Numbered from the stretch's first letter, positions 17,218 to 49,579 are shown. The stretch: 64,000 bases of DNA from Anaeramoeba ignava BMAN (GCA_028826165.1 JAPDFW010000115.1:62001-126000), one strand, 5' to 3'. Translations and numbers: made by a program. The notes: generated by a model from the letters alone, not told the origin.

Positions 17218-20200
17218 TTATTTTTGTTCTTCTTCTTTTTTTTTTGATAAATTGAAAATGTTTTTATAATAAAAATCAAGTAAATAAGATCCTAAAATTG
17301 ATTTTGGATTTAATAGAAAATAATCTTTTACATCAGTAAATTCTTCAAATATTTCTTGGTTTAATTTTGTTTCATCGATTTTATCATGATAAAGAAAATA
17401 AATTAATTGTTGAATTGTTTCAAATAATTTTCCTGAATAATCATGAACTTGATTTGAAGTATCATTAACATTCAATAAAAACATTCCTTTAAATAATTCA
17501 CTTCTTATTTGTAATATTAATTTATGAACTTTAATTTCTTTTTCTTCACAAATTATTGTAAAATCTTTGGTTTCATTTTGTTGATATAATTTATGGAAAT
17601 CTTTTAATATTCCTTTTATTCCTTCTTTTTCTTTAATCCAATTTAAATCAAATCCTGTTTTTTCAAATAAATCATAAGTTAATACTTTTTCAATTTCTTC
17701 AATTTCAATTTCTTTCATTCTTTCATTTTTTCTTTCATCTTGAATTTGTTTCTTTTCTTGAATTTGTTTCCTTTGTTTAATTTGATTTTTAAAATTGATT
17801 AAATTTTGAAATCTTTGAAGAAAATAATCAAAATTAACAAATCCAGTATAAAGAAAATTTAAAGCTAATTGAATATCTTTTTTTGGTTTTCTTCTGCAAA
17901 TATTGATAAATCTTGTTAAATTTGTTTGATTATTATCAAATCTTGTTAAAAGAATTAAATGATGAGCTTTGATTATTTCTCCATCATTACATTTAATTTC
18001 AATATCTGCAAATTCATTTGATTTCAAAAAATTGTTTAAATCTTCATTAAACGAATAAATTTTTGGAAATAAACCAATCATTTCTCGATTAATTTCATAA
18101 TCTTTCAAATCAAAAACATTTCCACCATTAACCATCAAGGATAGCATAAATGGAATATTTTTATTTTTACATGCATAATTTAAAACTGTTTCATTTTTAT
18201 TTGTTTTTGAATTAATATCAATTCCTTTTGAAAGTAAATATTTAATAATTTCAAGTGAAAAGCTTTTCTGTTTGCAAGCATAATGTAAAATTGTTTTCTT
18301 TTTCTCTTTTGTAATTGAATTAATATCAATTCCTGATGAAATTAAATATTCAATCATTTCAAGTGAAATATTTGGATTACGACAAGCATAATGTAAAATT
18401 GTTTTATTTCGATTTGCTTTTGAATTAATATCAATTCCTGATGAAATTAAATATTTAATAATTTCAAGTGAAATATTTGGATTTTGGCATGCAATATGTA
18501 AAGCTGTTTTTTTTAAACCTGTTATTTTTGAATTAATATCAATTCCTGATGAAATTAAATATTTAATAATTTCAAGTGAAATATTTGGATTCAAACATGC
18601 ATAGTGTAAAATTGTTTCATTTTTATTTGTTTTTGAATTAATATCAATTCCTTTTGAAAGTAAATATTTAATAATTTGAAGTGAAATATTTGGATTTTGG
18701 CATGCAATATGTAAAATTGTTTCATTTTGAATTGTTTTTGAATTAATATCAATTCCTTTTGAAAATAAATATTTAATAATTTCAAGTGAAATATTTGGAT
18801 TACGACATGCATAATTTAAAATTGTTTTAGTTTGAATTGTTTTTGAATTAATATCAATTCCTTTTGAAAGTAAATAGTCAATAATTTCAAGTGAAATATT
18901 TGGATTTTGGCATGCATAATGTAAAACTGTTTCATTTTTATATTTTGTAATTGAATTAATATCAATTCCTTTTGAAAATAAATATTTAATAATTTCAAGT
19001 GAAATATTTGGATTCAAACATGCATAATGTAAAATTGTTTTATTTTTATTTGTTTTTGAATTAATATCAATTCCTTTTGAAAGTAAATATTTAATAATTT
19101 CAAGTGAAATATTTTTATTTGGATTCAAAAATGCATAATGTAAAACTACTTCATCTTTATTTGTTTTTGAATTAATATCAATTCCTTTTGAAAGTAAATA
19201 TTTAATAATTTTAAGTGAAATATTTGGATTTGGATTCAAACATGCAATATGTAAAACTGTTTCATTTTGATTTGTTTTTGAATTAATATCAATTCCTTTT
19301 GAAAGTAAATATTCAATAATTTCAAGTGAAATTTTTGGATTCAAACACGCATAATGTAAAGCTACTTCATCTTGATTTGTTTTTGAGTTAATATCAATTC
19401 CTTTTGAAAGTAAATATTCAATAATTCCAAGTGAAATATTTTTATTTGGATTTAAGCATGCATAATGTAAAACTGTTTCATTTTTATTTGTTTTTGAGTT
19501 AATATCAATTCCTTTTGAAAGTAAATATTCGATAATTCCAAAGGAAATATTTGGATTTAAGCATGCAATATGTAAAATTGTTTCATTCCATCCAGTTTTT
19601 GAATTAATATCAATTCCTTTTGAAAGTAAATATTCAATAATTTGAAGGGAAGTATTTGGATTTAAGCATGCAATATGTAAAAATGTTTCATCTTGAATTG
19701 TTTTTGAGTTAATATCAATTCCTTTTGAAATTAAATATTTAATAATTCCAAGTGAAATATTTGAATTTTTGCATGCATAATGTAAAACTGTTTCATCTTT
19801 ATTTGTTTTTGAGTTAATATCAATTCCTTTTGAAAGTAAATATTCAATAATTTCAAATGAAATATTTGGATTTAAACATGCAATATGTAAAAATGTTTCA
19901 TCTTGATTTGTTTTTGAGTTAATATCAATTCCTGATGAAATTAAATATTTAATAATTCCAAGTGAAATATTTGGATTTAAACATACATAATGTAAAACTG
20001 TTTCACCATAAATTGTTTTTGAATTAATATCAATTCCTTTTGAAAGTAAAAATTCAGTCATTCCAAGTGAAATATTTGGATTTAAGCATTCAATATGTAA
20101 AACTGTTTCATTTTGATTTGTTTTTGAATTAATATCAATTCCTTTTGAAAGTAAATAGTCAATAATTTCAAATGAAATATTTGGATTTAAACATGCAATA

Positions 20201-20391
20201 TGTAATGAATTTCTTCTTTTTTCATCAATTAAATTTAGATTTGCACCTTTTGAAATTAAAAGTTCAATTATTTCTTTTGAAACTTGTTTTTCTATTGCAA
20301 AATGTAAAATTGGTTTTTGTTCTTTTATTAATTGATTTTCTGGAATTAATTCAATTTCTTTTAATTTTTGAAAATTGTTTTCTTCAATCAT
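17218..20391 (-). CDS. Ankyrin-repeat (~21) + tandem BTB/POZ protein (type B); true start possibly 21413 via a (DNK)n leader
   Basis: 35-aa ankyrin units (ETxLHxACxNPNISLEIIxYLxSKGIDINSK). BTB1 FADIEIKCNDGEIIKAHHLILLTRF...ALNFLYTG; BTB2 KDFTIICEEKEIKVHKLILQIRSELFKGMF...QLIYFLYHD. Confidence 0.92.
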   Translation of the reverse strand: MIEENNFQKLKEIELIPENQLIKEQKPILHFAIEKQVSKEIIELLISKGANLNLIDEKRRNSLHIACLNPNISFEIIDYLLSKGIDINSKTNQNETVLHIECLNPNISLGMTEFLLSKGIDINSKTIYGETVLHYVCLNPNISLGIIKYLISSGIDINSKTNQDETFLHIACLNPNISFEIIEYLLSKGIDINSKTNKDETVLHYACKNSNISLGIIKYLISKGIDINSKTIQDETFLHIACLNPNTSLQIIEYLLSKGIDINSKTGWNETILHIACLNPNISFGIIEYLLSKGIDINSKTNKNETVLHYACLNPNKNISLGIIEYLLSKGIDINSKTNQDEVALHYACLNPKISLEIIEYLLSKGIDINSKTNQNETVLHIACLNPNPNISLKIIKYLLSKGIDINSKTNKDEVVLHYAFLNPNKNISLEIIKYLLSKGIDINSKTNKNKTILHYACLNPNISLEIIKYLFSKGIDINSITKYKNETVLHYACQNPNISLEIIDYLLSKGIDINSKTIQTKTILNYACRNPNISLEIIKYLFSKGIDINSKTIQNETILHIACQNPNISLQIIKYLLSKGIDINSKTNKNETILHYACLNPNISLEIIKYLISSGIDINSKITGLKKTALHIACQNPNISLEIIKYLISSGIDINSKANRNKTILHYACRNPNISLEMIEYLISSGIDINSITKEKKKTILHYACKQKSFSLEIIKYLLSKGIDINSKTNKNETVLNYACKNKNIPFMLSLMVNGGNVFDLKDYEINREMIGLFPKIYSFNEDLNNFLKSNEFADIEIKCNDGEIIKAHHLILLTRFDNNQTNLTRFINICRRKPKKDIQLALNFLYTGFVNFDYFLQRFQNLINFKNQIKQRKQIQEKKQIQDERKNERMKEIEIEEIEKVLTYDLFEKTGFDLNWIKEKEGIKGILKDFHKLYQQNETKDFTIICEEKEIKVHKLILQIRSELFKGMFLLNVNDTSNQVHDYSGKLFETIQQLIYFLYHDKIDETKLNQEIFEEFTDVKDYFLLNPKSILGSYLLDFYYKNIFNLSKKKEEEQK

Positions 20392-20439
20392 TTGCCAAAT
20401 ATCTTCAATCTCTTTTATTTTTGAATCCTTTCAATAATC

Positions 20440-21413
20440 TTCAATTCTTCTTTATTATCTTTTATTATCTTTATTATGTTTTTAATATCTTTAATATCTT
20501 TATTATCTTTAATATCTTTATTATTATCTTTATTATCTTTATTATCTTTATTATCTTTATTATCTTTATTATCTTTTAATATCTTTATTATCTTTAATAT
20601 CTTTATTATCTTTTAATATCTTTATTTTTTCTTTAATATCAATTTTTTTTAAATATTTTTTATTATCTTTATTATCTTTATTATCTTTATTATCTCTTTA
20701 TTATCTTTATTATCTTTATTATCTTTATTATCTTTTATTATCTTTATTATCTTTATTTATCTTTATTATCTTTACTTTATTATCTTCATTATATTTAATA
20801 TCTTTATTATCTTTATTATCTTTTTTATCTTTAAAAATTATGAAATTTGTTTTGCTCTTTATTATCTTTTTTATCTTTTTATTTTTATTTATATTTTTTT
20901 CTTTATTATTTTTTTTCTTTTTTTTCTTTTTCTTTCTTATCTTTATTAATATTTTTATTATCTTTATTATCTTTATTATCTTTTTATCTTTTATTATCTT
21001 TTATTATCTTTATTATCTTTATTATCTTTTATTATCTTTTTATCTTTATTATCTTTATTATCTTTTTATCTTTTTTTATCTTTATTATCTTTATTATCTT
21101 TATTATCTTTATTATCTTTATTATCTTTATTATCTTTATTATTTATCTTTATTATCTTTATCTTTATTATCTTTAATATCTTTTATTATCTTTAATATCT
21201 TTTAATATCTTTATTATTGTTTTTGTGTGTTTTTTATTATCTTTATTATCTTTAATATCTTTAATATCTTTAATATCTTTATTATCTTTTTATTATCTTT
21301 TAATATCTTCATTATATATCTTTATTATCCTTAATATCTTTATTATCTTTATTATCTTTAATATCTTTATTATCTTTAATATCTTTATTATCTTTATTAT
21401 CCTTATTATTCAT
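20440..21413 (-). repeat. (GATAATAAA)n 9-mer satellite headed by ATG AAT AAT AAG GAT (degenerate DNK-coding leader)
   Basis: (TTTATTATC)n on the + strand. ATG at 21413-21411. Many indels break the frame. Confidence 0.85.
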
Positions 21414-21516
21414 TTTTGTGTGCTTGTTTGTGTTTTTATTAAAATAAAAAAATGGAAAAAAAAATCTTTTTTTTTTATATTTTTGAATAAAAAAGAAGAA
21501 GAAAGCAAAAAAAAAG

Positions 21517-21632
21517 TTTGTTTGTTTGTTTGTTTGTTTGTTTGTTTGTTTGTTTGTTTGTTTGTTTGTTTGTTTGTTTGTTTGTTTGTTTGTTTGTTTG
21601 TTTGTTTGTTTGTTTTTTTGTTTGTTTGTTTT
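21517..21632. repeat. (GTTT)n microsatellite
   Basis: Direct reading. Confidence 0.95.
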
Positions 21633-21678
21633 ATTTTATTTGCTTTTATTTTATTTGCTTTTATTTTATTTGCTTTTA

Positions 21679-26858: not shown

Positions 26859-26999
26859 TTTAAATAAAATAATTTAAAAAAAAAAATTTAAAAAAAAAAT
26901 GAAAAAAGAAAAAAAATGAAAAAGGAGATTTTTTTATTTTTTATTTATTTTAAAAAAAAAATTATTTCAAAAATAAAAAAAATAAAAAAAATAAAAAAA

Positions 27000-29328: not shown

Positions 29329-29491
29329 TAGAAAAAAAAAAGGAAAAAATGAAAAAAAAAATGAAAAAAAAATTTTTGTTTTTAAAATTCATTTTTTTTC
29401 TTTTTTTCTTTTTTTAAAATTATTTTCTTTTTTAATTAATTAGTTGCAAAAAACAAAAAACAAAAAACAAAAAACAAAAACAAAATTTAAC

Positions 29492-30986
29492 ATGCTTGAT
29501 GAAATTGAAGATTATGATGAAAGACTTACAAAAATTTGTAATGAAATTAGTTCATCAATAAACTCATTAAGAAGTTTAAAAGGAAGATCTAGAGACCAAA
29601 AATCTGAAGAAATTTCTGACCAATTAAATAAAGCTAAAACACTTTATCGGAGTTTTAAAGCTGAATTAAGAGAATTACCTTTTAATGAAAAAGAAAGTTG
29701 GCAAAAGGTTTTTAATTCTTTTAAATTATTTTTTTTTGTTTACGTTTTTTTTTTAATTAAAAATTTTTTTTTGATTTTTTTTTTTAGAAATCAAGTCAAC
29801 ATAACGATACAATTACTGGGTTAATTAATGATTTTAATTATGTTAGAGAAACTGCAGAAAAAGATGAATTAATGGATGGAAGAACAGGTAAAATTTTTTC
29901 TTATTTTTTTTTAACTTGATCAAAAAAAGAAATTTTCAATTTTTCCCTTTTATAAATAAATAAATAAATAAAAATATAAAATCTAAATATAATTATAAAT
30001 ATAAATATAAATATAAATATAAATATAAATATAAATATAAATATAAATATAAATATAAATATAAATATAAATATAAATATAAATATAAAAATAAATATAA
30101 ATATAAATATAAATCTAAATATAAATATAAATATAAATATAAATATAAATATAAATCTAAATATAAATATAAATATAAATCTAAATATAAATATAAATAT
30201 AATTATAAATATAAATATAATTATAAATATAATTATAAATATAAATATAAATATAATTATAAATATAAATATAAATATAAATATAAATATAAATATAAAT
30301 ATAAATATAAATATAAATATAAATATAAATATAAATATAAATATAAATATAAATATAAATATAAAAATATAAATATAAATATAAATATAAATATAAATAT
30401 AATTATAAATATAAATATAAATATAAATATAAATATAAATATAAAAATATAAATATAAATATAAATATAAATATAAATATAAATATAAATATAAATATAA
30501 ATATAAATATATTTTAAATATAAAATTTAAATAGATAATACGGTTGATAAAGAACAAATGACACCACATCAATTACTTGATAGGGGATTAAACATTCAAG
30601 ATGAATCACTTGAGTCAACAAACAGAATGAAAAAAACAATTGCACAAACAGATCAAGTATTTTTTAAAAAAAAAATATCAAAATTCAAATTGAAATTTTA
30701 ATATTAAAAATAAAATAAAATAAAAAAGGTTGGAATGAATACACTTGTAACTTTAAATGAACAAACAGAACAAATCCAAAGAATTAGTGAAGGAGTCGAT
30801 AAAATTGATTCCAATTTGAAAATTGCAGATCGAGAAATTCGATTATTTGTGAAAAGAATGGCAACTGATAAATGCATTGCAGTTTTATTTCTTTTAGTTG
30901 TTCTTGGTTTTATTGCAGTTATAATTTATGCTATTGTTAAGAAAAACAAACCTCAAAATGTCCCTAATTCAGCAAAAGACGTTTAA
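29492..30986 (+). CDS. NPSN: NPSN-type (novel plant SNARE) Qb-SNARE, ~231 aa. Exons 29492-29707, 29788-29887, 30535-30656, 30729-30986
   Basis: The spliced product has an N-terminal helical bundle, then MTPHQLLDRGLNIQDES...TDQ|VGMNTLVTLNEQTEQIQRI...KRMATDKCIAVLFLLVVLGFIAVIIYAIV. The QTEQ zero layer and ATDKCI before the TM helix are NPSN hallmarks. Confidence 0.88.
29888..30534 (+). repeat. 647-nt intron of (ATAAAT)n satellite
   Basis: GTAAAA...TAG, phase 1. Confidence 0.88.
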
Positions 30987-33548: not shown

Positions 33549-33571
33549 AGAAATGAAGCAAAAAATTATTT

Positions 33572-35590
33572 TTATTTCAATAAGGAATCAAGTATTGATT
33601 TTGGATTTAATAGATAAAAATCTTTTAAATCTTCAAATTCTTCAAATATTTCTTTTGGAATTTCTTTTTCAAATTCATCATGATAAAGAAAGTAAATTAA
33701 TTCTTGAATTGTTTCAAATGATTTTCCTGAATAATCATGAACTTGATTTGAAGTATCATTAACATTCAATTCAAACATTCCTTTAAATAATTCACTTCTT
33801 ATTTGTAATATTAATTTATGAACTTTAATTTCTTTTTCTTCACAAATTATTGTAAAATCTTTGGTTTCATTTTGTTGATATAATTTTGATAAATCTTTTA
33901 ATATTCCTTTTCTTCCTTCTTTTTCTTTAATCCATTTTGAATCAAATCCAATTTCTTTAAATAATTCATTCACTTTTTCTTCTTTTTCTTCTTGAATTTG
34001 TTTCTCGATTGTGTTTGAAATTAATTTTTGTTCATTTTTTTGTTGAAGTCCAAAGTGAAATAGGAATGAAGAGTGATGAAAAGAACGAAATGGATGAAAT
34101 GGAAGACTATTTAAAGAATCTTTTTTTTGAGAAATTGATGAAAATTCTTGAATTAATTGTTGAAATCTCTGGTTGAAATTATCAAAATCAATTAATCCAG
34201 TATAAAGAAAATTTAAAGCAAATCGAATAATATCTTTTGATTTTTTTTTGCAAATATTGATAAATTTTTGGAAAAGTGTTGGATTATTATTGAATCTTAT
34301 TAAAAGAAATTGTTTGTGAACTTTGAATTTTGATTCATCATTGGATTTAATTTCAAAATCTTTAAATTCATTTGATTTCAAAAAATTGTTTAAGTCATAA
34401 CTAATTGAATAAAATCTCTCAAATAAATCAATCATTCTTTGTGTCAAGTTTTTATTATCAATTTCAAAAATATTTAGATAATTCAGTAAAAGAATCAAAA
34501 TCTTCATCGATAATCCATTTTTAAAAGCCAATTCAAAAGGTGTTTGATTGGCTTTATTTTTTGAATTAACATCAATTCCTTTTGAAATTAAATATTCAAT
34601 AATTTCAAGTGAAATATTTCGATTCGAACAAGCATAATGTAAAGCTGTTTGATTATTTGTTGTATTTAGTTTTGATCCTTTTTCAACTAATAATTCAATA
34701 ATTTCAAATGATGGGTAATTGTTAGACAAAGCAATATGTAAAGGTATTTCATTCCATCGATTTTCTGAATTGATTTCACATCCTTTCTCAATTAAAAATT
34801 GTATTATTTCTTTGGATAGATTAATCTTCTTCAAAATGATATGCAAAATATTTTCTTGATATTGATTTTTTGTGTTAATATCAATTCCTGATGAAATGAA
34901 TAATTGGATAATTTCAAGAGAAATATTTGGATTTTTACATGCAATATGTAAAGCTGTTTCTTGATATTGATTTTTTGCGTTAATATCAATTCCTGATGAA
35001 ATTAAATATTTAATAATTTCAAATGAAATATTTGGATTTAAACATGCATTATGTAAAAATGTTTCATTTCGGTTTGTTTTTGAATTAATATCAATTCCTT
35101 TTTCAATCAGAGATTTAATAATTTCAAGTGAAATATTTGGATTTTTCAAAGCAAGAAATAAAGTATTCTCATTTTGTTTATTTTTTGAATCATCATCAAT
35201 TTCTTTTTCAATTAAATATAAAATCACTTCATTGGAATAATTCTTTTTCAAAGCAATATTTAAAGGTTTTTCTTTCCATCTGTTTGTTAAGCTAATATCA
35301 GCTCCTTTTGAAATTAATAACTCAATAATTTCTTTATCTAATTTATTGCAAATTGTTGAATGTAAACATCCATTTCCAAGTGAATCAACCCAATTCAAAT
35401 TTGTTTCTTTTTCAATTAATAATTTTATAATTTGAATTGATGAATTTTGTTCAAAAGCAAAATTTAAAAATGGTTGATTTCTTTCTTCAAATTGTTTTGT
35501 TGTTTTTAAACTTGAAATTGAATTGAAAAATTCAATGTTTTTCATTTTAATTGCTTCATAAACTTTTTTTAATTCATTTTCTTGATTCAT
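33572..35590 (-). CDS. Ankyrin-repeat (~10) + tandem BTB/POZ protein (type A)
   Basis: Ankyrin TxLH motifs, BTB1 FKDFEIKSNDESKFKVHKQFL..., BTB2 KDFTIICEEKEIKVHKLILQIRSELF. Confidence 0.92.
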   Translation of the reverse strand: MNQENELKKVYEAIKMKNIEFFNSISSLKTTKQFEERNQPFLNFAFEQNSSIQIIKLLIEKETNLNWVDSLGNGCLHSTICNKLDKEIIELLISKGADISLTNRWKEKPLNIALKKNYSNEVILYLIEKEIDDDSKNKQNENTLFLALKNPNISLEIIKSLIEKGIDINSKTNRNETFLHNACLNPNISFEIIKYLISSGIDINAKNQYQETALHIACKNPNISLEIIQLFISSGIDINTKNQYQENILHIILKKINLSKEIIQFLIEKGCEINSENRWNEIPLHIALSNNYPSFEIIELLVEKGSKLNTTNNQTALHYACSNRNISLEIIEYLISKGIDVNSKNKANQTPFELAFKNGLSMKILILLLNYLNIFEIDNKNLTQRMIDLFERFYSISYDLNNFLKSNEFKDFEIKSNDESKFKVHKQFLLIRFNNNPTLFQKFINICKKKSKDIIRFALNFLYTGLIDFDNFNQRFQQLIQEFSSISQKKDSLNSLPFHPFRSFHHSSFLFHFGLQQKNEQKLISNTIEKQIQEEKEEKVNELFKEIGFDSKWIKEKEGRKGILKDLSKLYQQNETKDFTIICEEKEIKVHKLILQIRSELFKGMFELNVNDTSNQVHDYSGKSFETIQELIYFLYHDEFEKEIPKEIFEEFEDLKDFYLLNPKSILDSLLK

Positions 35591-35758: not shown

Positions 35759-38668
35759 TTATTTTTGTTCTTCTTCTTTTTTTGTTTTTGATGAATTGAA
35801 AATGTTTTTAGAATAAAAATCAAGTAAATATCCTAAAATTGATTTTGGATTTAATTGATAAAAATCTTTTACATCTTCAAATTCTTCAAATATTTCTTTT
35901 GTTAATTTTGTTTCTTCAATTTTATCATGATAAAGAAAATAAATTAATTCTTGAATTGTTTCAAATGATTTTCCTGAATAATCATGAACTTGATTTGAAG
36001 TATCATTAACATTCAATAAAAACATTCCTTTAAATAATTCACTTCTTATTTGTAATATTAATTTATGAACTTTAATTTCTTTTTCTTCACAAATTATTGT
36101 AAAATCTTTGGTTTCATTTTGTTGATATAATTTATCAAAATCTTTTAATATTCCTTTTCTTCCTTCTTTTTCTTTAATCCATTTTGAATCAAATCCAATT
36201 TCTTTAAATAATTCATTTACTTTTTCTTCTTTTTCTTCTTGAATTTGTTTCTCGATTGTGTTTGAAATTAATTTTTGTTCATTTTTTCGTTGAAGTTCAA
36301 AGTGAACTGAAAAGGAATTATAAATACGAAATGGAAGACTATTTAAAGAATCTTTTATTTGAGAAATTGATGGAAGTTCTTGAATTAATTGTTGAAATCT
36401 CTGGTTGAAATGATCAAAATCAATTAATCCAGTATAAAGAAAATTTAAAGCAAATCGAACAATATCTTTTGATTTTTTTTTGCAAATATTGATAAATTTT
36501 TGGAAAAGTGTTGGATTATTATTGAATCTTATTAAAAGAAATTGTTTGTGAACTTTGAATTTTGATTCATCATTGGATTTAATTTCAAAATCTTTAAATT
36601 CATTTGATTTCAAAAAATTGTTTAAATCATAACTAATTGAGTAAAATCTCTCAAATAAATCAATCATTCTTTGTGTCAAGTTTTTATTACCAATTTCAAA
36701 AATATCTAGATAATTCAGTAAAAGAATCAAAATCTTCATCGATAATCCATTTTCAAAAGCAAAATCAAAAGGTGTTTGATTGGCTTTATTTTTTGAATTA
36801 ACATCAATTCCTTTTGAAATTAAATATTTAATAATTTCAATGGAAATATATGGATTTTGACATGCATAATGTAAAATTGTTTCATTCCATCTTGTTTTTG
36901 AATTGATATCAATTCCTTTTGAAATTAAATATTCAATAATTTCAAATGAAATATTTGGATTTTCACATGCAATATGTAAAACTGTTTCATTTTCATTTGT
37001 TTTTGAATTAACATCAATTCCTGATGAAATTAAATATTTAATAATTTCAAATGAAATATTTGGATTTTCACATGCAATATGTAAAACTGTTTCATTTCTA
37101 TTTGTTTTTGAATTAACATCAATTCCTTTTGAAATTAAATATTTAATAATTTCAAATGAAATATTTCGATTCGAACATGCAATATGTAAAACTGTTTCAT
37201 TTCTATTTGTTTTTGAATTAACATCAATTCCTGATGAAATTAAATATTTAATAATTTCAAATGAAATATTTCGATTCGAACATGCAATATGTAAAACTGT
37301 TTCATTTTCATTTGTTTTTGAATTAATATCAGATCCTGATGAAATTAAATATTTAATAATTTCAAGTGAAATATTTGGATTTTTACATACATAATGTAAA
37401 GGTGATTCATTTCTATATTTTGTTTTTGAATTAACATCAGATCCTGATGAAATTAAATATTCAATAATTTTAAATGAAATATTTGGATTTTTACATTCAT
37501 AATGTAAAATTGTTTCATTTTTATATTTTGTTTTTGCATTAATATCAATTCCTGATGAAATTAAATATTCAATAATTTCAATGGAAATATTATTTTTATA
37601 TGCAATATGCAAAGCTGTTTCATTTTCATTTGTTTTTGAATTAATATCAATTCCTGATGAAACTAATAATTTAATAATTTCAATGGAAATATTTGGATTT
37701 TTACATGCATAATGTAAAGGTGATTCATTTCTATATTTTGCTTTTGAATTAACATCAGATCCTTTTGAAATTAAATATTCAATAATTTTAAATGATGGAT
37801 AATTGTTGCACAAAGCATAATGTAAAGCTGTTTGATTATTTGTTGTATTTAGTTTTGATCCTTTTTCAACTAATAATTCAATAATTTCAAATGATGGGTA
37901 ATTGTTAGACAAAGCAATATGTAAAGGTATTTCATTCCATCGATTTTCTGAATTGATTTCACATCCTTTCTCAATTAAAATTTGTATTATTTCTTTGGAT
38001 AGATTAATCTTCTTCAAAATGATATGCAAAATATTTTCTTGATATTCATTTTTTGTGTTAATATCAATTCCTGATGAAATTAATAATTGGATAATTTCAA
38101 GAGAAATATTTGGATTTTTAAATGCAATATGTAAAAATGTTTCATTTCGGTTTGTTTTTGAATTAATATCAATTCCTTTTTCAATCAGAGATTTAATAAT
38201 TTCAAGTGAAATATTTGGATTTTTCAAAGCAAGAAATAAAGTATTCTCATTTTGTTTATTTTTTGAATCATCATCAATTTCTTTTTCAATTAAATATAAA
38301 ATCACTTCATTGGAATAATTCTTTTTCAAAGCAATATTTAAAGGTTTTTCTTTCCATCTGTTTGTTAAGCTAATATCAGCTCCTTTTGAAATTAATAACT
38401 CAATAATTTCTTTATCTAATTTATTGCAAATTGCTGAATGTAAACATCCATTTCCAAGTGAATCAACCCAATTCAAATTTGTTTCTTTTTCAATTAATAA
38501 TTTTATAATTTGAATTGATGAATTTTGTTCAAAAGCAAAATTTAAAAATGGTTGATTTCTTTCTTCAAATTGTTTTGTTGTTTTTAAACTTGAAATTGAA
38601 TTGAAAAATTCAATTTTTTTCGTTTTAATTGCTTCATAAACTTTTTTTAATTCATTTTCTTGATTCAT
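35759..38668 (-). CDS. Ankyrin-repeat (~18) + tandem BTB/POZ protein (type A N-terminus, type B C-terminal tail)
   Basis: Near-identical tandem paralogue of 33572-35590 with extra repeats. Confidence 0.92.
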   Translation of the reverse strand: MNQENELKKVYEAIKTKKIEFFNSISSLKTTKQFEERNQPFLNFAFEQNSSIQIIKLLIEKETNLNWVDSLGNGCLHSAICNKLDKEIIELLISKGADISLTNRWKEKPLNIALKKNYSNEVILYLIEKEIDDDSKNKQNENTLFLALKNPNISLEIIKSLIEKGIDINSKTNRNETFLHIAFKNPNISLEIIQLLISSGIDINTKNEYQENILHIILKKINLSKEIIQILIEKGCEINSENRWNEIPLHIALSNNYPSFEIIELLVEKGSKLNTTNNQTALHYALCNNYPSFKIIEYLISKGSDVNSKAKYRNESPLHYACKNPNISIEIIKLLVSSGIDINSKTNENETALHIAYKNNISIEIIEYLISSGIDINAKTKYKNETILHYECKNPNISFKIIEYLISSGSDVNSKTKYRNESPLHYVCKNPNISLEIIKYLISSGSDINSKTNENETVLHIACSNRNISFEIIKYLISSGIDVNSKTNRNETVLHIACSNRNISFEIIKYLISKGIDVNSKTNRNETVLHIACENPNISFEIIKYLISSGIDVNSKTNENETVLHIACENPNISFEIIEYLISKGIDINSKTRWNETILHYACQNPYISIEIIKYLISKGIDVNSKNKANQTPFDFAFENGLSMKILILLLNYLDIFEIGNKNLTQRMIDLFERFYSISYDLNNFLKSNEFKDFEIKSNDESKFKVHKQFLLIRFNNNPTLFQKFINICKKKSKDIVRFALNFLYTGLIDFDHFNQRFQQLIQELPSISQIKDSLNSLPFRIYNSFSVHFELQRKNEQKLISNTIEKQIQEEKEEKVNELFKEIGFDSKWIKEKEGRKGILKDFDKLYQQNETKDFTIICEEKEIKVHKLILQIRSELFKGMFLLNVNDTSNQVHDYSGKSFETIQELIYFLYHDKIEETKLTKEIFEEFEDVKDFYQLNPKSILGYLLDFYSKNIFNSSKTKKEEEQK

Positions 38669-38855
38669 TTTTAAATTTTTTATTTTTTATTTTTGAATGA
38701 AAAAAAAAAATGAAAAAAAAAAGAAAAAAAAAAATTAATTCAAAATAAAAAAGAAAAAAAAAAGAGGAATTATTTTTTAAGATATTTAAGATAATAAAGA
38801 AAGAAAAAGAGGAATTATTTTTTAAGATATTAAAGATATTAAAAAAAAAGTGGAA

Positions 38856-41800
38856 TTATTTTTGTTCTTCTTCTTTTTTTGTTTTTGATGAATTGAAAAT
38901 GTTTTTAGAATAAAAATCAAGTAAATATGATCCTAAAATTGATTTTGGATTTAATTGATAAAAATCTTTTACATCAGTAAATTCTTCAAATATTTCTTTT
39001 GTTAATTTTGTTTCATCAATTTTATCATGATAAAGAAAATAAATTAATTCTTGAATTGTTTCAAATGATTTTCCTGAATAATCATGAACTTGATTTGAAG
39101 TATCATTAACATTCAATAAAAACATTCCTTTAAATAATTCACTTCTTATTTGTAATATTAATTTATGAACTTTAATTTCTTTTTCTTCACAAATTATTGT
39201 AAAATCTTTGGTTTCATTTTGTTGATATAATTTATCAAAATCTTTTAATATTCCTTTTATTCCTTCTTTTTCTTTAATCCAATTTAAATCAAATCCTGTT
39301 TTTCAAATAAATCATAAGTTAATCCTTTTTCAATTTCTTCAATTTCAATTTCTTTCATTTTTTCTTTTTCTCTTTCATCTTGAATTTGTTTCTTTTCTTG
39401 AATTTGATTTTTAAAATTGATTAAATTTTGAAATCTTTGAAGAAAATAATCAAAATTAACAAATCCAGTATAAAGAAAATTTAAAGCTAATTGAATATCT
39501 TTTTTTGGTTTTCTTCTGCAAATATTGATAAATCTTGTTAAATTTGTTTGATTATTATCAAATCTTGTTAAAAGAATTAAATGATGAGCTTTGATTATTT
39601 CTCCATCATTACATTTAATTTCAATATCTGTAAATTCATTTGATTTCAAAAAATTATTTAAATCTTCATTAAATGAATAAATTTTTGGAAATAAATCAAT
39701 CATTTCTTGATTAATTTCATCATCTTTCAAATCGAAAACATTTCCACCATTAATCATCAATAATTTCATTAGTGGAATATTTTTATTTTGGCAAGCATAA
39801 TACAGAGCTGTTTCATTTTGATTTGTTTTTGAATTAATATCAATTCCTTTTGAAATTAAATATTTAATAATTTCAACTGAAATATTTGGATTTAAGCATG
39901 CATAATGTAAAATTGTTTTCTTTTGTTTTGTTTTTGAATTAATATTAATTCCTTTTGAAATTAAATATTTAATAATTTGAAGTGAAATATTTGGATTTTT
40001 ACATGCAATATGTAAAGCTGTTTCATTTTGATTTGTTTTTGAATTAATATTAATTTCTGATGAAATTAAATATTTAATAATTTCATTTGTTGAATTATTG
40101 CAAAAATAATCCAAAACTTCTTTATTTTGTTTTGTTTTTGAATTAATATCAATTCCCTTTGAAATTAAATATTCAATAATTTGAAGTGAAATATTTGGAT
40201 TTGGATTTTGATAAGCATAATGTAAAACTGTTTCATTTTGATTTGTTTTTGAATTAATATTAATTCCTGATGAAATTAAATATTTAATAATTTCAACTGA
40301 AATATTTGGATTTAAGCATGCATAATGTAAAACTGTTTTATTTTGATTTGTTTTTGAATTAATATCAATTCCTGATGAAATTAAATATTTAATAATTGGA
40401 AGTGAAATATTTGGATTTAAGCATGCATAATGTAAAATTGTTTCATTATAATTTGTTTTTGAATTAATATTAATTCCTGATGAAATTAAATATTTAATAA
40501 TTTCAACTGAAATATTTGGATTTAAACATGCATAATGTAAAATTGTTTTATTTTGATTTGTTTTTGAATTAATATCAATTCCTGATGAAATTAAATATTT
40601 AATAATTTGAAGTGAAATATTTGGATTTAAACATGCAATATGTAAAACTGTTTCGTTTTGATTTGTTTTTGAATTAATATCAATTCCTGATGAAATTAAA
40701 TATTTAATAATTTCAAATGAAATATTTGGATTTAAGCATGCAATATGTAAAATTGTTTCATTTTGATTTGTTTTTGAATTAATATCAATTCCTGATGAAA
40801 TTAAATATTTAATAATTTCATTTGTTGAATTATTGCAAAAATAATCCAAAACTTCTTTATTTTGTTTTGTTTTTGAATTAATATAAATTCCTTTTAAAAT
40901 TAAATATTCAATAATTTGAAGTGAAATATTTGGATTTGGATTTTGATAAGCATAATGTAAAATTGTTTCATTTTGATTTGTTTTTGAATTAATATCAATT
41001 TCTGATGAAATTAAATATTTAATAATTGGAAGTGAAATATTTGGATTTTTACATGCATAATGTAAAATTGTTTCGTTTTGATTTGTTTTTGAATTAATAT
41101 CAATTCCTGATGAAATTAAATATTCAATAATTGGAAGTGAAATATTTGGATTTAAGCATGCATAATGTAAAATTGTTTCATTATAATTTGTTTTTGAATT
41201 AATATTAATTCCTTTTGAAATTAAATATTTAATAATTTCAACTGAAATATTTGGATTTTTACATGCATAATGTAAAATTGTTTCATTTTGATTTGTTTTT
41301 GAATTAATATCAATTCCTTTTAAAATTAAATATTTAATAATTTGAAGTGAAATATTTATATTTAAACATGCATAATGTAAAATTGTTTCATTTTGATTTG
41401 TTTTTGAATTAATATTAATTCCTTTTGAAATTAAATATTCAATAATTTGAAGTGAAATATTTGGATTTTTACATACATAATGTAAAATTGTTTCATTTTG
41501 ATTTGTTTTTGAATTAATATCAATTCTTGATGAAATTAAATATTTAATAATTTTAAGTGAAATATTTGGATTTTTACATGCATAATGTAAAGCTGTTTCA
41601 TTTTGATTTGTTTTTGAATTAATATCAATTCCTGATGAAATTAAATATTTAATAATTTGAAGTGAAATATTTGGATTTAAGCATGCATAATGTAAAACTG
41701 TTTCATTTTGATTTGTTTTTGAATTAATATCAATTCTTGATGAAATTAAATATTTAATAATTTTAAGTGAAATATTTGGATTTTTACATGCAATATGTAA

Positions 41801-44800
41801 AATTGTTTCATTTTGATTTGTTTTTGAATTAATATCAATTCCTGATGAAATTAAATATTTAATAATTTCAAGTGAAATATTTGGATTTTTGTATGCATAA
41901 TGTAAAATTGTTTCATTTTGATTTGTTTTTGAATTAATATCAATTCCTGATGAAATTAAATATTTAATAATTGGAAGTGAAATATTTGGATTTTTACATG
42001 CATAATGTAAAATTGTTTCATTTTGATTTGTTTTTGAATTAATATCAATTCCTGATGAAATTAAATATTCAATAATTTGAAGTGAAATATTTGGATTTAA
42101 GCATGCATAATGTAAAATTGTTTCATTTTGATTTGTTTTTGAATTAATATCAATTCCTGATGAAATTAAATATTTAATAATTTCATTTGTTGAATTATTG
42201 CAAAAATAATCCAAAACTTCTTTATTTTGTTTTGTTTTTGAATTAATATAAATTCCTTTTAAAATTAAATATTCAATAATTTGAAGTGAAATATTTGGAT
42301 TTGGATTTTGATAAGCATAATGTAAAATTGTTTCATTTTGTTTTGTTTTTGAATTAATATTAATTCCTGATGAAATTAAATATTTAATAATTTGAAGTGA
42401 AATATTTGGATTTTTACATGCATAATGTAAAGCTGTTTCATTTTGATTTGTTTTTGAATTAATATCAATTTCTGATGAAATTAAATATTCAATAATTTGA
42501 AGTGAAATATTTTTATTTTTACATGCATAATGTAAAATTGTTTCGTTTTGATTTGTTTTTGAATTAATATCAATTCCTGATGAAATTAAATATTTAATAA
42601 TTTCAACTGAAATATTTGGATTTTTACATGCATAATGTAAAATTGTTTCATTTTGATTTGTTTTTGAATTAATATCAATTCCTGATGAAATTAAATATTC
42701 AATCATTTCAAGTGAAATATTTGGATTTTTACATGCATAATGTAAAATTGTTTCATTTTGATTTGTTTTTGAATTAATATCAATTTCTGATGAAATTAAA
42801 TATTTAATAATTTCATTTGTTGAATTATTGCAAAAATAATCCAAAACTTCTTCATTTTGTTTTGTTTTTGAATTAATATAAATTCCTTTTAAAATTAAAT
42901 ATTCAATAATTTGAAGTGAAATATTTGGATTTGGATTTTGATAAGCATAATGTAAAATTGTTTCATTTTGTTTTGTTTTTGAATTAATATTAATTCCTTT
43001 TGAAATTAAATATTTAATAATTTCAAGTGAAATATTTGGATTTAAACATGCAATATGTAAAGCTGTTTCATTTTGTTTTGTTATTGAATTAATATCAATT
43101 CCTGATGAAATTAAATATTTAATAATTTCAACTGAAATATTTGGATTTTTACATGCATAATGTAAAATTGTTTCATTTTGATTTGTTTTTGAATTAATAT
43201 CAATTCCTGATGAAATTAAATATTTAATAATTTCAACTGAAATATTTTGATTTTTACATGCATAATGTAAAATTGTTTCATTTTGATCATTTTCTTTTGA
43301 ATTAATATCAATTCCTGATGAAATTAAATATTTAATAATTTCATTTGTTGAATTATTGCAAAAATAATCTAAAACTTCTTTATTTTGTTTTGTTTTTGAA
43401 TTAATATAAATTCCTTTTAAAATTAAATATTCAATAATTTGAAGTGAAATATTTGGATTTGGATTTTGATAAGCATAATGTAAAATTGTTTCATTTTGTT
43501 TTGTTTTTGAATTAATATCAATTCCTGTTGAAATTAAATATTTAATAATTTGAAGTGAAATATTTGGATTTAAACATGCATAATGCAAAATTGTTTCATT
43601 TTGATTTGTTTTTGAATTAATATCAATTCTTGATGAAATTAAATATTTAATAATTTCAACTGAAATATTTGGATTTTTACATGCATAATGTAAAATTGTT
43701 TCATTTTGATTTGTTTTTGAATTAATATCAATTCCTGATGAAATTAAATATTTAATAATTTCAACTGAAATATTTTGATTTTTACATGCATAATGTAAAA
43801 TTGTTTCATTTTGATCATTTTCTTTTGAATTAATATCAATTCCTGATGAAATTAAATATTTAATAATTTCATTTGTTGAATTATTGCAAAAATAATCCAA
43901 AACTTCTTTATTTTGTTTTGTTTTTGAATTAATATAAATTCCTTTTAAAATTAAATATTCAATAATTTGAAGTGAAATATTTGGATTTTTGTATGCATAA
44001 TGTAAAACTGTTTCATTTTGATTTGTTTTTGAATTAATATCAATTCCTAATGAAATCAAATATTTAATAATTTCAACTGAAATATTTGGATTTTTACATG
44101 CATAATGTAAAATTGTTTCATTTTGTTTTGTTTTTGAATTAATATCAATTCCTGATGAAATTAAATATTCAATAATTTCAAGTGAAATATTTGGATTTAA
44201 GCATGCGTAATGTAAAATTGTTTCATTTTGTTTTGTTTTTGAATTAATATTAATTCCTGATGAAATTAAATATTTAATAATTTCATTTGTTGAATTATTG
44301 CAAAAATAATCTAAAACAGTTTCATTTTGATTTGTTATTGAATTAATATTAATTCCTGATGAAATTAAATATTTAATAATTTGAACTGAAATATTTGGAT
44401 TTAAACATGCATAATGTAAAATTGTTTCATTTTGATTTGTTTTTGAATTAATATCAATTCCTGATGAAATTAAATATTTAATAATTTCAACTGAAATATT
44501 TGGATTTTTACATGCATAATGTAAAATTGTTTCATTTTGATTTGTTTTTGAATTAATATCAATTCCTGATGAAATTAAATATTTAATAATTTCAACTGAA
44601 ATATTTGGATTTTTACATGCAATATGTAAAATTGTTTCATTTTGATTTGTTTTTGAATTAATATCAATTCCTGATGAAATTAAATATTTAATAATTTCAT
44701 TTGTTGAATTATTGCAAAAATAATCCAAAAATTCTTTATTTTGATTTGTTATTGAATTAATATTAATTCCTTTTAAAATTAAATATTCAATAATTTGAAG

Positions 44801-47800
44801 TGAAATATTTGGATTTGGATTTTTGTATGCATAATGTAAAATTGTTTCGTTTTGATTTGTTTTTGAATTAATATCAATTCCTTTTGAAATTAAATATTTA
44901 ATAATTTTAAGTGAAATATTTGGATTTAAGCATGCATAATGTAAAATTGTTTCTTTTCGTTTTGTTTTTGAATTAATATCAATTTCTGATGAAATTAAAT
45001 ATTCAATAATTGGAAGTGAAATATTTGGATTTTTACATGCATAATGCAATATTGTTTCATTTTGATTTGTTTTTGAATTAATATCAATTCTTGATGAAAT
45101 TAAATATTTAATAATTTCAACTGAAATATTTGGATTTTTACATGCATAATGTAAAATTGTTTCATTTTGATTTGTTTTTGAATTAATATTAATTCCTGAT
45201 GAAATTAAATATTTAATAATTTGAAGTGAAATATTTGGATTTAAACATGCAATATGTAAAATTGTTTCATTTTGATTTGTTTTTGAATTAATATCAATTT
45301 CTGATGAAATCAAATATTTAATAATTTCAAGTGAAATATTTGGATTTTTACATGCATAATGTAAAATTGTTTCATTTTGTTTTGTTTTTGAATTAATATC
45401 AATTCTTGATGAAATCAAATATTTAATAATTTCAAGTGAAATATTTGGATTTTTACATGCATAATGTAAAATTGTTTCATTTTGATTTGTTTTTGAATTA
45501 ATATCAATTCCTGATGAAATTAAATATTTAATAATTTCATTTGTTGAATTATTGCAAAAATAATCCAAAACTTCTTTATTTTGTTTTGTTTTTGAATTAA
45601 TATAAATTCCTTTTAAAATTAAATATTCAATAATTTGAAGTGAAATATTTGGATTTGGATTTTTGTATGCATAATGTAAAATTGTTTCATTTTGATTTGT
45701 TTTTGAATTAATATCAATTTCTGATGAAATTAAATATTTAATAATTGGAAGTGAAATATTTGGATTTTTACATGCATAATGTAAAATTGTTTCGTTTTGA
45801 TTTGTTTTTGAATTAATATCAATTCCTGATGAAATTAAATATTCAATAATTGGAAGTGAAATATTTGGATTTGGATTTAAGCATGCATAATGTAAAATTG
45901 TTTCATTTTGATTTGTTTTTGAATTAATATTAATTCCTTTTGAAATTAAATATTTAATAATTTCAAGTGAAATATTTGGATTTTTACATGCATAATGTAA
46001 AATTGTTTCATTTTGATTTGTTTTTGAATTAATATCAATTCCTTTTAAAATTAAATATTTAATAACTTGAAGTGAAATATTTGGATTTTTACATGCATAA
46101 TGTAAAATTGTTTCATTTTGATTTGTTTTTGAATTAATATAAATTCCTTTTGAAATTAAATATTTAATAATTTCAACTGAAATATTTGGATTTAAACATG
46201 CATAATGTAAAATTGTTTCATTTTGATTTGTTTTTGAATTAATATCAATTCCTTTGGAAGTTAAATATTCAATAATTTCAACTGAAATATTTGGATTTAA
46301 GCATGCATAATGTAAAATTGTTTCATTTTGTTTTGTTTTTGAATTAATATCAATTTCTGATGAAATTAAATATTCAATAATTTGAACTGAAATATTTGGA
46401 TTTAAACATGCATAATGCAAAATTGTTTCATTTTGTTTTGTTTTTGAATTAATATCAATTTCTGATGAAATTAAATATTTAATAATTTGAAGTGAAATAT
46501 TTGGATTTTTACATGCATAATGTAAAATTGTTTCATTTTGATTTGTTTTTGAATTAATATCAATTTCTGATGAAATTAAATATTTAATAATTTCATTTGT
46601 TGAATTATTGCAAAAATAATCTAAAACTTCTTTATTTTGTTTTGTTTTTGAATTAATATAAATTCCTTTTAAAATTAAATATTCAATAATTTGAAGTGAA
46701 ATATTTGGATTTGGATTTTTGTATGCATAATATAAAATTGTTTCGTTTTGTTTTGTTTTTGAATTAATATCAATTCCTTTTGAAATTAAATATTTAATAA
46801 TTTTAAGTGAAATATTTGGATTTTTACATGCATAATGTAAAATTGTTTCATTTCGTTTTGTTTTTGAATTAATATTAATTCCTTTTGAAATTAAATATTT
46901 AATAATTTCAACTGAAATATTTGGATTTTTACATGCATAATGCAAAATTGTTTCATTTTGTTTTGTTTTTGAATTAATATTAATTCCTGATGAAATTAAA
47001 TATTTAATAATTTCAAGTGAAATATTTTGATTTTTACATGCATAATGTAAAATTGTTTCATTTTGATCATTTTCTTTTGAATTAATATCAATTTCTGATG
47101 AAATTAAATATTTAATAATTTCATTTGTTGAATTATTGCAAAAATAATCCAAAACTTCTTTATTTTGTTTTGTTTTTGAATTAATATAAATTCCTTTTAA
47201 AATTAAATATTCAATAATTTGAAGTGAAATATTTGGATTTGGATTTTGATAAGCATAATATAAAATTGTTTCGTTTTGATTTGTTTTTGAATTAATATCA
47301 ATTCCTTTTGAAATTAAATATTTAATAATTTTAACTGAAATATTTGGATTTTTACATGCATAATGTAAAATTGTTTCTTTTCGTTTTGTTTTTGAATTAA
47401 TATTAATTCCTGATGAAATTAAATATTCAATAATTTCAACTGAAATATTTGGATTTAAGCATGCAATATGTAAAGTTGTTTCATTTTGTTTTGTTTTTGA
47501 ATTAATATTAATTCCTGATGAAATTAAATATTTAATAATTTCATTTGTTGAATTATTGCAAAAATAATCCAAAACTTCTTTGTTTTGATTTGTTTTTGAA
47601 TTAATATTAATTCCTTTTAAAATTAAATATTCAATAATTTGAAGTGAAATATTTGGATTTGGATTTTTGTATGCATAATATAAAATTGTTTCATTTTGAT
47701 TTGTTTTTGAATTAATATTAATTCCTGATGAAATTAAATATTTAATAATTGGAAGTGAAATATTTGGATTTAAGCATGCATAATGTAAAGCTGTTTCATT

Positions 47801-49579
47801 TTGTTTTGTTTTTGAATTAATATTAATTCCTTTTGAAATTAAATATTTAATAATTGGAAGTGAAATATTTTTATTTGGATTTTTACATGCATAATGTAAA
47901 ATTGTTTCGTTTTGATTTGTTTTTGAATTAATATAAATTCTTGATGAAAGTAAATATTTAATAATTTCAAGTGAAATATTTGGATTTAAGCATGCATAAT
48001 GTAAAATTGTTTCATTTTGATTTGTTTTTGAATTAATATCAATTCTTGATGAAATTAAATATTTAATAATTGGAAGTGAAATATTTTTATTTAGATTTAA
48101 ACATGCATAATGTAAAGCTGTTTCATTCCAATTTGTTTTTGAATTAATATAAATTCTTGATGAAATTAAATATTTAATAATTGGAAGTGAAATATTTGGA
48201 TTTAAACATGCAATATGTAAAATTGTTTCATTTTGATTTGTTTTTGAACTAATATCAATTCTTGATGAAATTAAATATTCAATAATTTCAACTGAAATAT
48301 TTGGATTTTTACATGCATAATGTAAAATTGTTTCATTTTGATTTGTTTTTGAATTAATATTAATTCCTTTTGAAATTAAATATTTAATAATTTCAACTGA
48401 AATATTTGGATTTTTACATGCAATATGTAAAATTGTTTCATTTTTATTTGTTTTTGAATTAATATAAATTCTTGATGAAATTAAATATTTAATAATTTCA
48501 AGTGAAATATTTGGATTTAAACAAGCATAATGTAAAGCTGTTTCATTTTGATTTGTTTTTGAATTAATATAAATTCCTGATGAAATTAAATATTTAATAA
48601 TTTCAAGTGAAATATTTTTATTTAGATTTAAACATGCATAATGTAAAACTGTTTCATTTTGATTTGTTTTTGAATTAATATCAATTCTTGATGAAATTAA
48701 ATATTTAATAATTGGAAGTGAAATATTTGGATTTAAACATGCAATATGTAAAGTTGTTTCATTTTGTTTTGTTTTTGAATTAATATCAATTCCTGATGAA
48801 ATTAAATATTTAATAATTTCAAGTGAAATATTTGGATTTTTACATGCATAATGTAAAGCTGTTTCATTTTGATTTGTTTTTGAATTAATATCAATTCCTG
48901 ATGAAATTAAATATTCGATAATTTCAAGTGAAATATTAGGATTTAAACATGCAATATGTAATGAATTTCTTCTTTTTTCATTAATTAAATTTAGATTTGC
49001 ACCTTTTGAAATTAAAAGTTGAATTATTTCTTTTGAAACTTGTTTTTCTATTGCAAAATGCAAAATTGGTTTTTGTTCTTTTATTAATTGATTTTCTGGA
49101 ATTGTTTCAATTTCTTTTAATTCTTGAAAATTGTTTTCTTCAATCATTTGCCAAATATCTTCAATCTCTTTAATATCTTTAATATCTTTATTATCTTTAT
49201 TATCTTTATTATCTTTATTATCTTTATTATCTTTATTATCTTTATTATCTTTATTATCTTTATTATCTTTATTATCTTTTTATTCTTTATTATCTTTATT
49301 ATCTTTAATATCTTTAATATCTTTAATATCTTTAATATCTTTATTATCTTTAATATCTTTATTATATTTAATATCTTTATTATATTTATTATCTTTATTA
49401 TCTTTATTATCTTTATTATCTTTATTATCTTTATTATCTTTAATATCTTTATTATCTTTAATATCTTTATTATCTTTATTATCTTTATTATCTTTATTAT
49501 CTTTATTATCTTTATTATCTTTAATATCTTTAATATCTTTATTATCTTTATTAACTTGATCAACTTGTTGATTGTTCAT
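38856..49579 (-). CDS. Giant ankyrin-repeat (~88) + tandem BTB/POZ protein (type B), ~3570 aa if the 1-nt deletion at ~39300 and the TAA at 49282-49280 are errors
   Basis: The 3287-aa ORF 39284-49147 leaves frame at a T5 run (T6 in the paralogue at ~17658), and BTB2 continues to 38856. The upstream ORF 49280-49579 is in the same frame (offset 432 nt) and is separated only by one TAA. Confidence 0.85.
39790..48970 (-). repeat. ~87 tandem 105-bp ankyrin-coding units with 12 interspersed 99-bp variant units
   Basis: A 105-bp period is visible directly. The variant tttgttgaattattgcaaaa occurs at ~40086, 40821, 42186, 42816, 43344, 43872, 44286, 44700, 45540, 46596, 47124 and 47544. Confidence 0.95.
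49165..49552 (-). repeat. (GATAATAAA/GATATTAAA)n 9-mer satellite encoding (DNK/DIK)n
   Basis: Direct reading. It is in frame with the giant ankyrin ORF. Confidence 0.9.

Follow-up and report, generated by a model that had tools for sequence, protein, structure and literature searches.

Four genes in the window analysed here, a 64,000 nt stretch of the Anaeramoeba ignava BMAN genome (contig C116, 62001-126000), encode proteins in which a tandem array of ankyrin repeats is followed by two BTB domains, BTB1 and BTB2. These ankyrin-BTB genes, called A to D below, differ widely in array length, and the longest array has close to ninety units. An earlier reading of the same DNA (the original prediction) had seen in them a constant effector joined to a reshuffled recognition array. 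In the following, positions are counted within the window unless a contig is named. The assembly consists of 147 contigs and 42.8 Mb, and both its size and its composition agree with the published BMAN genome, which has an A+T content of 80.65% (PMC11550330). All genome-wide results rest on this one assembly. The window has a G+C content of about 20% and contains long unbroken open reading frames (ORFs). In protein searches, the close relatives of the C-terminal module were all found under A. ignava accessions. The organism houses bacterial symbionts (PMC11550330).

The four genes and their arrays

All four genes are uninterrupted ORFs (Table 1) with strong Pfam ankyrin matches (Ank_2 at 1.8e-162 in gene A). 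A Pfam BTB match is found near the C-terminus of A, B and C, at 5e-13 to 1.6e-15 (in gene A at 5.1e-13, residues 932-1012). A hidden Markov model (HMM) of the repeat unit counts 21 units in A, 9 in B, 17-18 in C and 89 in D including the caps, or 87 full units, in good agreement with the approximately 21, 10, 18 and 88 repeats proposed originally. The predominant unit is 35 amino acids (aa) long, which corresponds to the canonical 33-aa ankyrin repeat with two residues added in the inter-helix turn. An AlphaFold2 (AF2) model of nine units from gene D (residues 60-390) reaches a predicted local distance difference test score (pLDDT) of 87.2 and shows helix-turn-helix repeats, in which the first helix spans unit positions 3-9 and the second 15-23.

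Genes B, C and D stand in tandem, and the N-terminus and first units of B match those of C, with a best-hit unit identity of 95.7%. The description of all four genes as a tandem cluster does not extend to gene A, which lies 13 kb apart, with PH-domain, leucine-rich repeat and other ORFs in between.

Table 1. Features of the ankyrin-BTB locus and its neighbour (window positions)
Feature	Position	Strand	Description
Gene A	17218..20391	-	1057 aa: N-cap, ~21 ankyrin units (mostly 35 aa), BTB1, helical linker, BTB2
Gene B	33572..35590	-	672 aa: ~9 ankyrin units and BTB1-BTB2, shorter C-terminal tail
Gene C	35759..38668	-	969 aa: ~17 ankyrin units and BTB1-BTB2; mosaic
Gene D, main ORF	39284..49147	-	3287 aa: N-cap, 87 full units and C-cap, BTB1; premature end just before BTB2
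Gene D, ankyrin array	39815..48970	-	87 units: 61 of 35 aa, 14 of 37 aa, 9 of 33 aa, 3 of 34 aa
Gene D, frameshift site	39299..39303	-	A5 homopolymer, against A6 in gene A (from the aligned C-terminal module DNA of all four genes)
Gene D, BTB2 in shifted frame	38856..39302	-	148 codons open to the stop at 38856-38858; 97-100% identical to A and C
Gene D, 5' flank	49148..49579	-	(GATAATAAA)n-like microsatellite, non-coding, common to the gene A 5' flank
HUWE1-type HECT ligase gene	50200..60309	-	two ORFs, 1250 and 1946 aa; neighbour of D

Shuffling within the array of gene D

The 61 units of 35 aa in gene D have a mean nucleotide identity of 92%, and 57 of them are distinct. Across these units 25 of the 35 positions are invariant or nearly so, and about ten carry two to four residues at intermediate frequency (positions 2, 7, 10, 13, 17, 18, 21, 26, 27 and 29 in canonical ankyrin numbering). 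The original prediction that such positions toggle among small sets of alleles in mosaic order is borne out: the residues that it listed are present, and in nearly free combination. All four gametes are found in 173 of 231 pairs of polymorphic sites. The array also contains 12 copies of a doublet of one 37-aa and one 33-aa unit, irregularly spaced. This doublet is the only element that recurs, and higher-order periodicity was not found in the D array, where the similarity of two units is independent of their distance and, in a unit-matrix analysis, repeated blocks comprise at most three units. Together, the four-gamete pairs, the distance-independent similarity and the lack of longer blocks indicate that the array has been thoroughly shuffled at a scale below that of the unit. 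Such a pattern would be expected from recurrent unequal crossover or from conversion over short tracts.

Two other origins of the array were considered. An artefact or collapse during assembly is unlikely, since hardly any two units are the same and repeats of more than three units in a row are absent, and recent amplification of a block is excluded because no such block recurs.

Several of the alternatives in gene D are two bases apart within one codon (TAT/ATT, AAA/TTA, TCA/AAA), with intermediates that are rare or absent, and the same alternatives are present in gene A. The variants are therefore older than the present arrangement of the array. Judged from these codons, the toggling appears to result when a small number of old unit variants, which gene A has as well, are reshuffled, and hypermutation of a binding surface is undemonstrated.

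Exchange between neighbours, duplication and the frameshift in gene D

The C-termini of the four proteins had been described as almost invariant, which is too simple: there are two types, A/D and B/C. The nucleotide identity of the C-terminal module is 96.5% between A and D, 94.6% between B and C, and 77-82% for the cross pairs. BTB1 is 73-82% identical between the A/D and B/C pairs, and the linker is unalignable between them; the BTB2 core alone is alike across all four genes, at 92-100% identity. This near-invariance includes synonymous sites, so that gene conversion among the neighbouring genes has likely homogenised BTB2. Direct evidence of exchange between neighbours comes from the mosaic identity of gene C, whose 5' part and BTB1 are B-like and whose 3' end is D-like to beyond the stop codon. 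In a sliding comparison B and C are 95-100% identical up to BTB2, after which C and D are 93-100% identical and the identity between B and C drops to 82, 60 and 4%.

A further duplicate is found on another contig, where C125:1-13440 is a segmental duplicate of window positions 53518-38717. The 3' end of the HECT ligase gene next to D is 93.6% identical in this copy. The D-like gene shows about 88% identity and has about 64 units, and as its frame switches at least seven times it is probably a pseudogene. Array lengths among these paralogues are thus 21 (A), about 64 (C125) and 88 (D) units. The marks of unequal crossover and gene conversion that the original prediction expected are present in the four-gamete pairs, in the mosaic 3' end of gene C and in the paralogue of about 64 units.

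Homology between A and D reaches about 430 nt 5' of both start codons and about 60 nt into the 3' flank. Near the end of the coding region the two genes differ by one base, G-AAAAAA-C in A and G-AAAAA-C in D (39299-39303). The frame of D after the shift is fully open, which fits either an assembly error or a very recent mutation. An 89-aa protein (P0059) matches the stretch 38856-39302; as it is separate from the main ORF of D, the deposited annotation seems to carry the same shift. On the 5' side, the locus had been drawn up to 49579, beyond the ORF of gene D and into the flank that it has in common with gene A (Table 1). A coding leader of the (DNK)n type for D in 49148-49579 is excluded by an in-frame stop 44 codons 5' of the ATG. 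The (GATAATAAA)n-like microsatellites at 49148-49579 and 20392-20822 each have a (DNK)n-like frame with in-frame stops.

A large family in one genome

The module of gene A has 131 matches in the genome DNA, of which about 110 span the whole module at 47-70% identity. These full-module loci are spread over more than 60 contigs and are frequently arranged in tandem. The length of the open frames varies from less than 300 to 3408 codons, and about one third of the matches contain in-frame stops. A protein search gave 312 cluster representatives at E of at most 1e-10, and 30 of the 150 matches listed were looked up: 27 are from A. ignava, two from A. flamelloides, and one is an unrelated spider BTB protein. 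Collecting the ankyrin-BTB genes of the genome, as had been suggested, therefore yields a large and clustered family that is almost entirely from Anaeramoeba. EukProt holds transcriptome models for two module matches other than genes A-D (P0035 and P0154).

Gene D is not the only giant in the family. Contig C91 has a frame of 2684 codons with 36/37-aa units and C21 one of 2250 codons with 36/40/44-aa units, and since their unit types differ, very long arrays must have arisen repeatedly. On C64, a family ankyrin array at 644450-646000 switches frame several times near the inter-repeat hairpins, and one junction resembles a duplicated array start.

The C-terminal module and Cullin-3

A profile of the C-terminal module and an AF2 model of it were built from an alignment of 22 family C-termini. 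The model, which covers the last 330 aa of gene A, has a pLDDT of 91.6 and a predicted template modelling score (pTM) of 0.89. It contains the last ankyrin cap, a trimmed BTB1, a long helical hairpin, a complete BTB2 of the long form and a C-terminal helix of 24 residues. BTB1 is modelled with two strands and three or four helices, without a third strand. In comparisons of the family profile with the Protein Data Bank (PDB), BTB2 matches the BTB domains of KBTBD4, KBTBD2, SPOP and KLHL3, with E-values down to 2.6e-10, and BTB1 matches that of CP190 (4e-7). In structural comparison with VIA-align the best match is the tethered Miz1-BCL6 POZ heterodimer 4u2m (Z 13.2, 203 residues, 4.2 Å), followed at Z 11-12 by BTB domains of the Cullin-3-bound kind (A55, KLHL11, KEAP1, KBTBD2 and the BTB/3-box of SPOP). 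Pfam, the PDB profile, AF2, Foldseek and VIA-align (Z 11-13) all agree on the BTB/POZ fold. As the match to 4u2m spans both domains, we infer that BTB1 and BTB2 may form an intramolecular pseudo-dimer, packed like the two halves of a BTB dimer.

The genome encodes several cullins, which by comparison with solved structures are Cul1/2-like (C71), Cul4-like (C74, C64, a second locus on C71, and C109) and Cul3-like (C58). The last of these (C58:18813-24257) is a Cullin-3 orthologue, matching Cullin-3 at 4e-119 and Cullin-4B at 2e-101. It is split by introns, one of which, of about 2.5 kb, follows exon 1; the Cul1/2-like gene and one of the Cul4-like genes are single ORFs. Exon 1 (118 aa) carries the motifs LSFEELYR and DILMYL, which are presumably the counterparts of the BTB-binding helices H2 and H5 in human CUL3. 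A prediction of the complex between the 330-aa module and these 118 residues of exon 1 only gave a score of 0.00, which speaks neither for nor against binding.

The BTB module is also joined to other domains, namely Kelch, Sel1 and Rab, in A. ignava (P0046, P0047, P0050, P0175) and in A. flamelloides (P0167), as would be expected of an adaptor cassette. With BTB2 closest to the BTB domains of Cullin-3 adaptors and a Cullin-3 orthologue in the genome, the module appears to be of the Cullin-3 adaptor type, as originally proposed.

Variation and the binding surface

Designed ankyrin repeat proteins (DARPins) are varied in their libraries at positions 2, 3, 5, 13, 14 and 33. Only two of these six binding positions (2 and 13) vary in gene D, where about 1.7 would be expected by chance, and positions 3, 5, 14 and 33 hold Q, E, N and K almost without exception. 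Among the other variable positions, 7 and 10 belong to the inner helix, where they may border the groove, 17, 18 and 21 are on the outer helix, and 26, 27 and 29 are in the loop that follows, with G27 replaced by R or E in some units. Most of the variation falls on the outer helix and that loop. By the canonical positions in the 61 units, a concentration of variation at target-binding residues was not found in the D array. The expectation that toggling would mark a binding surface is thus not borne out in gene D, where two of the ten toggling positions are canonical binding positions. A paralogue does show the pattern: the array at C64:640954-643014 has 34-aa units that are 92.5% identical, with a near-identical scaffold, and varies almost only at canonical positions 1-4 in the hairpin and 10, 12 and 13 on the inner helix. 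Across the family (385 units), the most variable positions include 2, 3, 13 and 14. The picture of a variable surface therefore seems to fit parts of the family better than the arrays in the window.

Ratios of nonsynonymous to synonymous differences per site (pN/pS) among units are highest in D (1.76), followed by the C64 array (1.37), A (1.09) and C (0.98). These are simple Nei-Gojobori counts in an 80% A+T genome with recombination, and both the extreme composition and the recombination make them crude estimates. In a codon bootstrap the value for D ranges from 0.68 to 5.88, with 12% of replicates at or below 1, and the excess over 1 is not significant. Positive selection on the array units is possible. 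The proposed check of the repeat units has therefore given clear signs of recombination, but not of diversifying selection.

Proposed explanation and alternatives

We consider it about 60% probable that genes A-D are recent local and segmental duplicates within an Anaeramoeba-specific family, and that they encode Cullin-3 receptors with arrays of variable length. BTB2 would dock on the N-terminal domain of the A. ignava Cullin-3 and the ankyrin array would hold the substrate, each paralogue acting as a substrate receptor of a Cullin-3 RING ubiquitin ligase (CRL3), as is the case for IBTK and Btb1 and has been proposed for ABTB1. As their sequences show, the arrays grow, shrink and are shuffled by unequal crossover and short-tract conversion between 105-bp units. 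Copies of the family are born and die, the copy on C125 being broken and gene D frameshifted.

Several observations count against this explanation. At the place of the phi-x-E motif of the alpha3-beta4 loop, which contacts Cullin-3 (L-K-E in KBTBD4), BTB2 has V/I-x-D and not the canonical glutamate; the aspartate (D250) is kept in at least 90% of the 22 members and is a conservative substitution. A BACK domain was not found in the module, and at most one helix (module residues 306-329) stands at the place of a 3-box, within the aligned ranges of the SPOP BTB/3-box and the KEAP1 BTB and 3-box. Gene B is without most of this C-terminal tail. Gene D, as assembled, has no BTB2 in its main ORF. Finally, recent paralogues differ in their BTB module at a pN/pS of 0.6-1.0, a high value if the effector is conserved. 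Composition or the decay of one copy may inflate this value; the duplicated HECT domain gives 0.80 by the same crude measure, and is a poor control for calibration because one copy is possibly decaying. The original picture of a constant effector with a reshuffled array therefore holds in so far as the BTB module is common to genes with very different array lengths, but the pN/pS of the module and the frameshift before BTB2 in D do not sit well with it.

Of the alternatives, neutral runaway expansion of repeats survives best, although we regard it as rather doubtful. The arrays, that of D above all, would have come about by unequal crossover while their content was under little or no selection. 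Gene D and similar giants would then be young or decaying, and the toggling would be leftover variation of ancestral units shuffled by recombination. Amplification of any unit free of stops gives a long open frame for free. The frameshift before BTB2 in D, the at least seven breaks in the C125 duplicate, and the in-frame stops in a third of the family matches all agree with such an origin, as do the unit pN/pS that does not differ significantly from 1 (0.68-5.9) and the location of eight of the ten variable positions in D outside the canonical binding set. However, neutral expansion does not readily explain why 25 of 35 positions are invariant over 61 units, or why 9.9 kb of sequence at 82% A+T contains no indels or stops when the C125 copy has decayed. 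The lack of a common block longer than three units also argues against a very recent burst, and the frame beyond the shift in D is fully open.

Another alternative goes further than the receptor explanation and assigns the family a role in intracellular surveillance, in which reshuffled arrays would recognise symbiont, viral or prey proteins and pass them to Cullin-3 for ubiquitination. This is speculation by analogy, and we think it improbable. It would suit a family that is large, lineage-specific and clustered, with units in combinatorial assortment and pN/pS point estimates of 1.0-1.8, in a host with bacterial symbionts (PMC11550330). The hairpin and inner-helix variation of the C64 array, and the presence of positions 2, 3, 13 and 14 among the most variable ones in the family, would suit it as well. 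Papers on the expansion of MATH-BTB adaptors in grasses also point to studies of adaptive evolution among adapters of ubiquitin ligases. On the other hand, the window arrays do not concentrate their variation on the binding surface, none of the selection tests reaches significance, and variable binding positions are generic to ankyrin families. A related and likewise unlikely proposition is that the more than 100 ankyrin-array Cullin-3 receptors, whose solenoids unequal crossover and short-tract conversion would keep rebuilding from a small alphabet of unit variants, provide germline combinatorial recognition of symbiont, giant-virus or prey proteins within the cell. If true, the family would be nature's equivalent of a DARPin library, linked to ubiquitination.

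A scaffold without ligase function, with the BTB pair as a cap or oligomerisation unit and the solenoids as elastic or membrane-cytoskeleton elements like ankyrins or NOMPC, for example around the symbiosome membrane network, is very improbable. In its favour, the two BTB domains are predicted to satisfy each other as a pseudo-dimer, BACK is absent and a 3-box not clear, and 60-90 repeats exceed the apparent need of a substrate receptor. Against it, BTB2 is closest to the BTB domains of Cullin-3 adaptors, Kelch, Sel1 and Rab domains are found on the same module in other proteins, and a membrane-binding or cytoskeletal domain is absent.

Relation to known systems

The receptor explanation has precedents in which ankyrin repeats are combined with BTB domains. 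IBTK, which has ankyrin repeats, RCC1 repeats and two BTB domains, is a Cullin-3 substrate receptor whose BTB region is required for binding to Cullin-3 (PMC4447969). As in the genes described here, IBTK in human and Btb1 in S. pombe have ankyrin repeats N-terminal to two BTB domains in one chain. They differ in having, between the ankyrin repeats and the BTB domains, RCC1 repeats, for which no Pfam match was found in A-D, and a long C-terminal substrate-binding region that A-D lack. They also have two ankyrin units in place of 9-88, and are encoded by one gene and not by more than 100 paralogues. The likeness is one of domain order rather than of established orthology by sequence. In the ESM-Atlas the best structural neighbour of the module is an RCC1 and BTB cluster named 'Claret isoform a' (template modelling score 0.61 over 228 residues), and one fragment of the family is labelled 'btk-binding protein-related' by its source.

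The order of ankyrin repeats followed by BTB is also found in ABTB1/BPOZ-type proteins (ABTB1 in chordates, At2g04740 in plants and YIL001W in yeast), and ABTB1 itself has two BTB domains. By language-model features these are the nearest named clusters, at 0.93-0.94, which with an overlap of only 125-133 of 256 is a lead and no more. Such proteins have few ankyrin repeats and are single-copy, and no sequence match to them was found among the 30 matches looked up of the 150 listed.

The lineage-specific MATH-BTB expansions of Cullin-3 adaptors in nematodes and grasses resemble the present family: they are large and clustered, and in them one BTB effector is paired with a recognition domain that evolves fast. 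It has been proposed that this domain is under positive selection and that such adaptors act against foreign proteins. There, a single MATH domain changes by point substitution, whereas here a tandem array changes in copy number and by shuffling of units; positive selection is only a possibility in these ankyrin-BTB arrays. The likeness to DARPins and other consensus ankyrin arrays lies in the near-identical scaffold units with a few variable positions in combinatorial order, and the variable positions of the C64 paralogue (1-4, 10, 12 and 13) largely coincide with the library positions. The arrays of the window are different in that, of the six library positions, just 2 and 13 are variable, in that their 35-aa units carry the two-residue insertion in the inter-helix turn, and in being natural arrays of up to 88 units.

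The family is set apart from known ankyrin-BTB systems by its more than 100 loci, by arrays of up to about 88 units that evolve by copy number and shuffling, and by the predicted BTB pseudo-dimer. The main text of the genome paper does not mention ankyrin or BTB, and its supplements give only generic family names (PMC11550330). No account of this expansion was found in a literature search on Anaeramoeba and BTB. Known adaptors with ankyrin repeats and BTB domains are single genes with a handful of repeats, in contrast to the more than 100 loci in this 43-Mb genome. If the proteins are CRL3 receptors, they would be among the largest repeat-based repertoires of substrate receptors in a protist, in a host that harbours bacterial symbionts. 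Should the arrays be neutral run-aways, the locus would still illustrate clearly how concerted and birth-and-death evolution proceed in a genome of extreme A+T content. It is also a natural experiment in the evolution of very long, consensus-like ankyrin solenoids and in the maintenance of their reading frame.

The neighbouring HECT ligase

A HUWE1-type gene lies 1 kb upstream of gene D, with Pfam matches to HECT (8e-106), UBM, UBA and DUF913. The adjacency to a HUWE1-like ligase noted originally is therefore real for gene D, but a functional link is weak. The family has more than 100 dispersed loci, and in the second neighbourhood of a HECT and an ankyrin-BTB gene that was examined (C125), the arrangement is the block duplicate described above. 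In a plain count, six of about 20 HECT loci have an ankyrin-BTB locus no more than about 21 kb away (one each on C116, C125, C7 and C27 and two on C69), including at least one block duplicate. Beyond the HECT gene, the last 2 kb of the window (62001-64000) are nearly without G or C (G+C 0.002).

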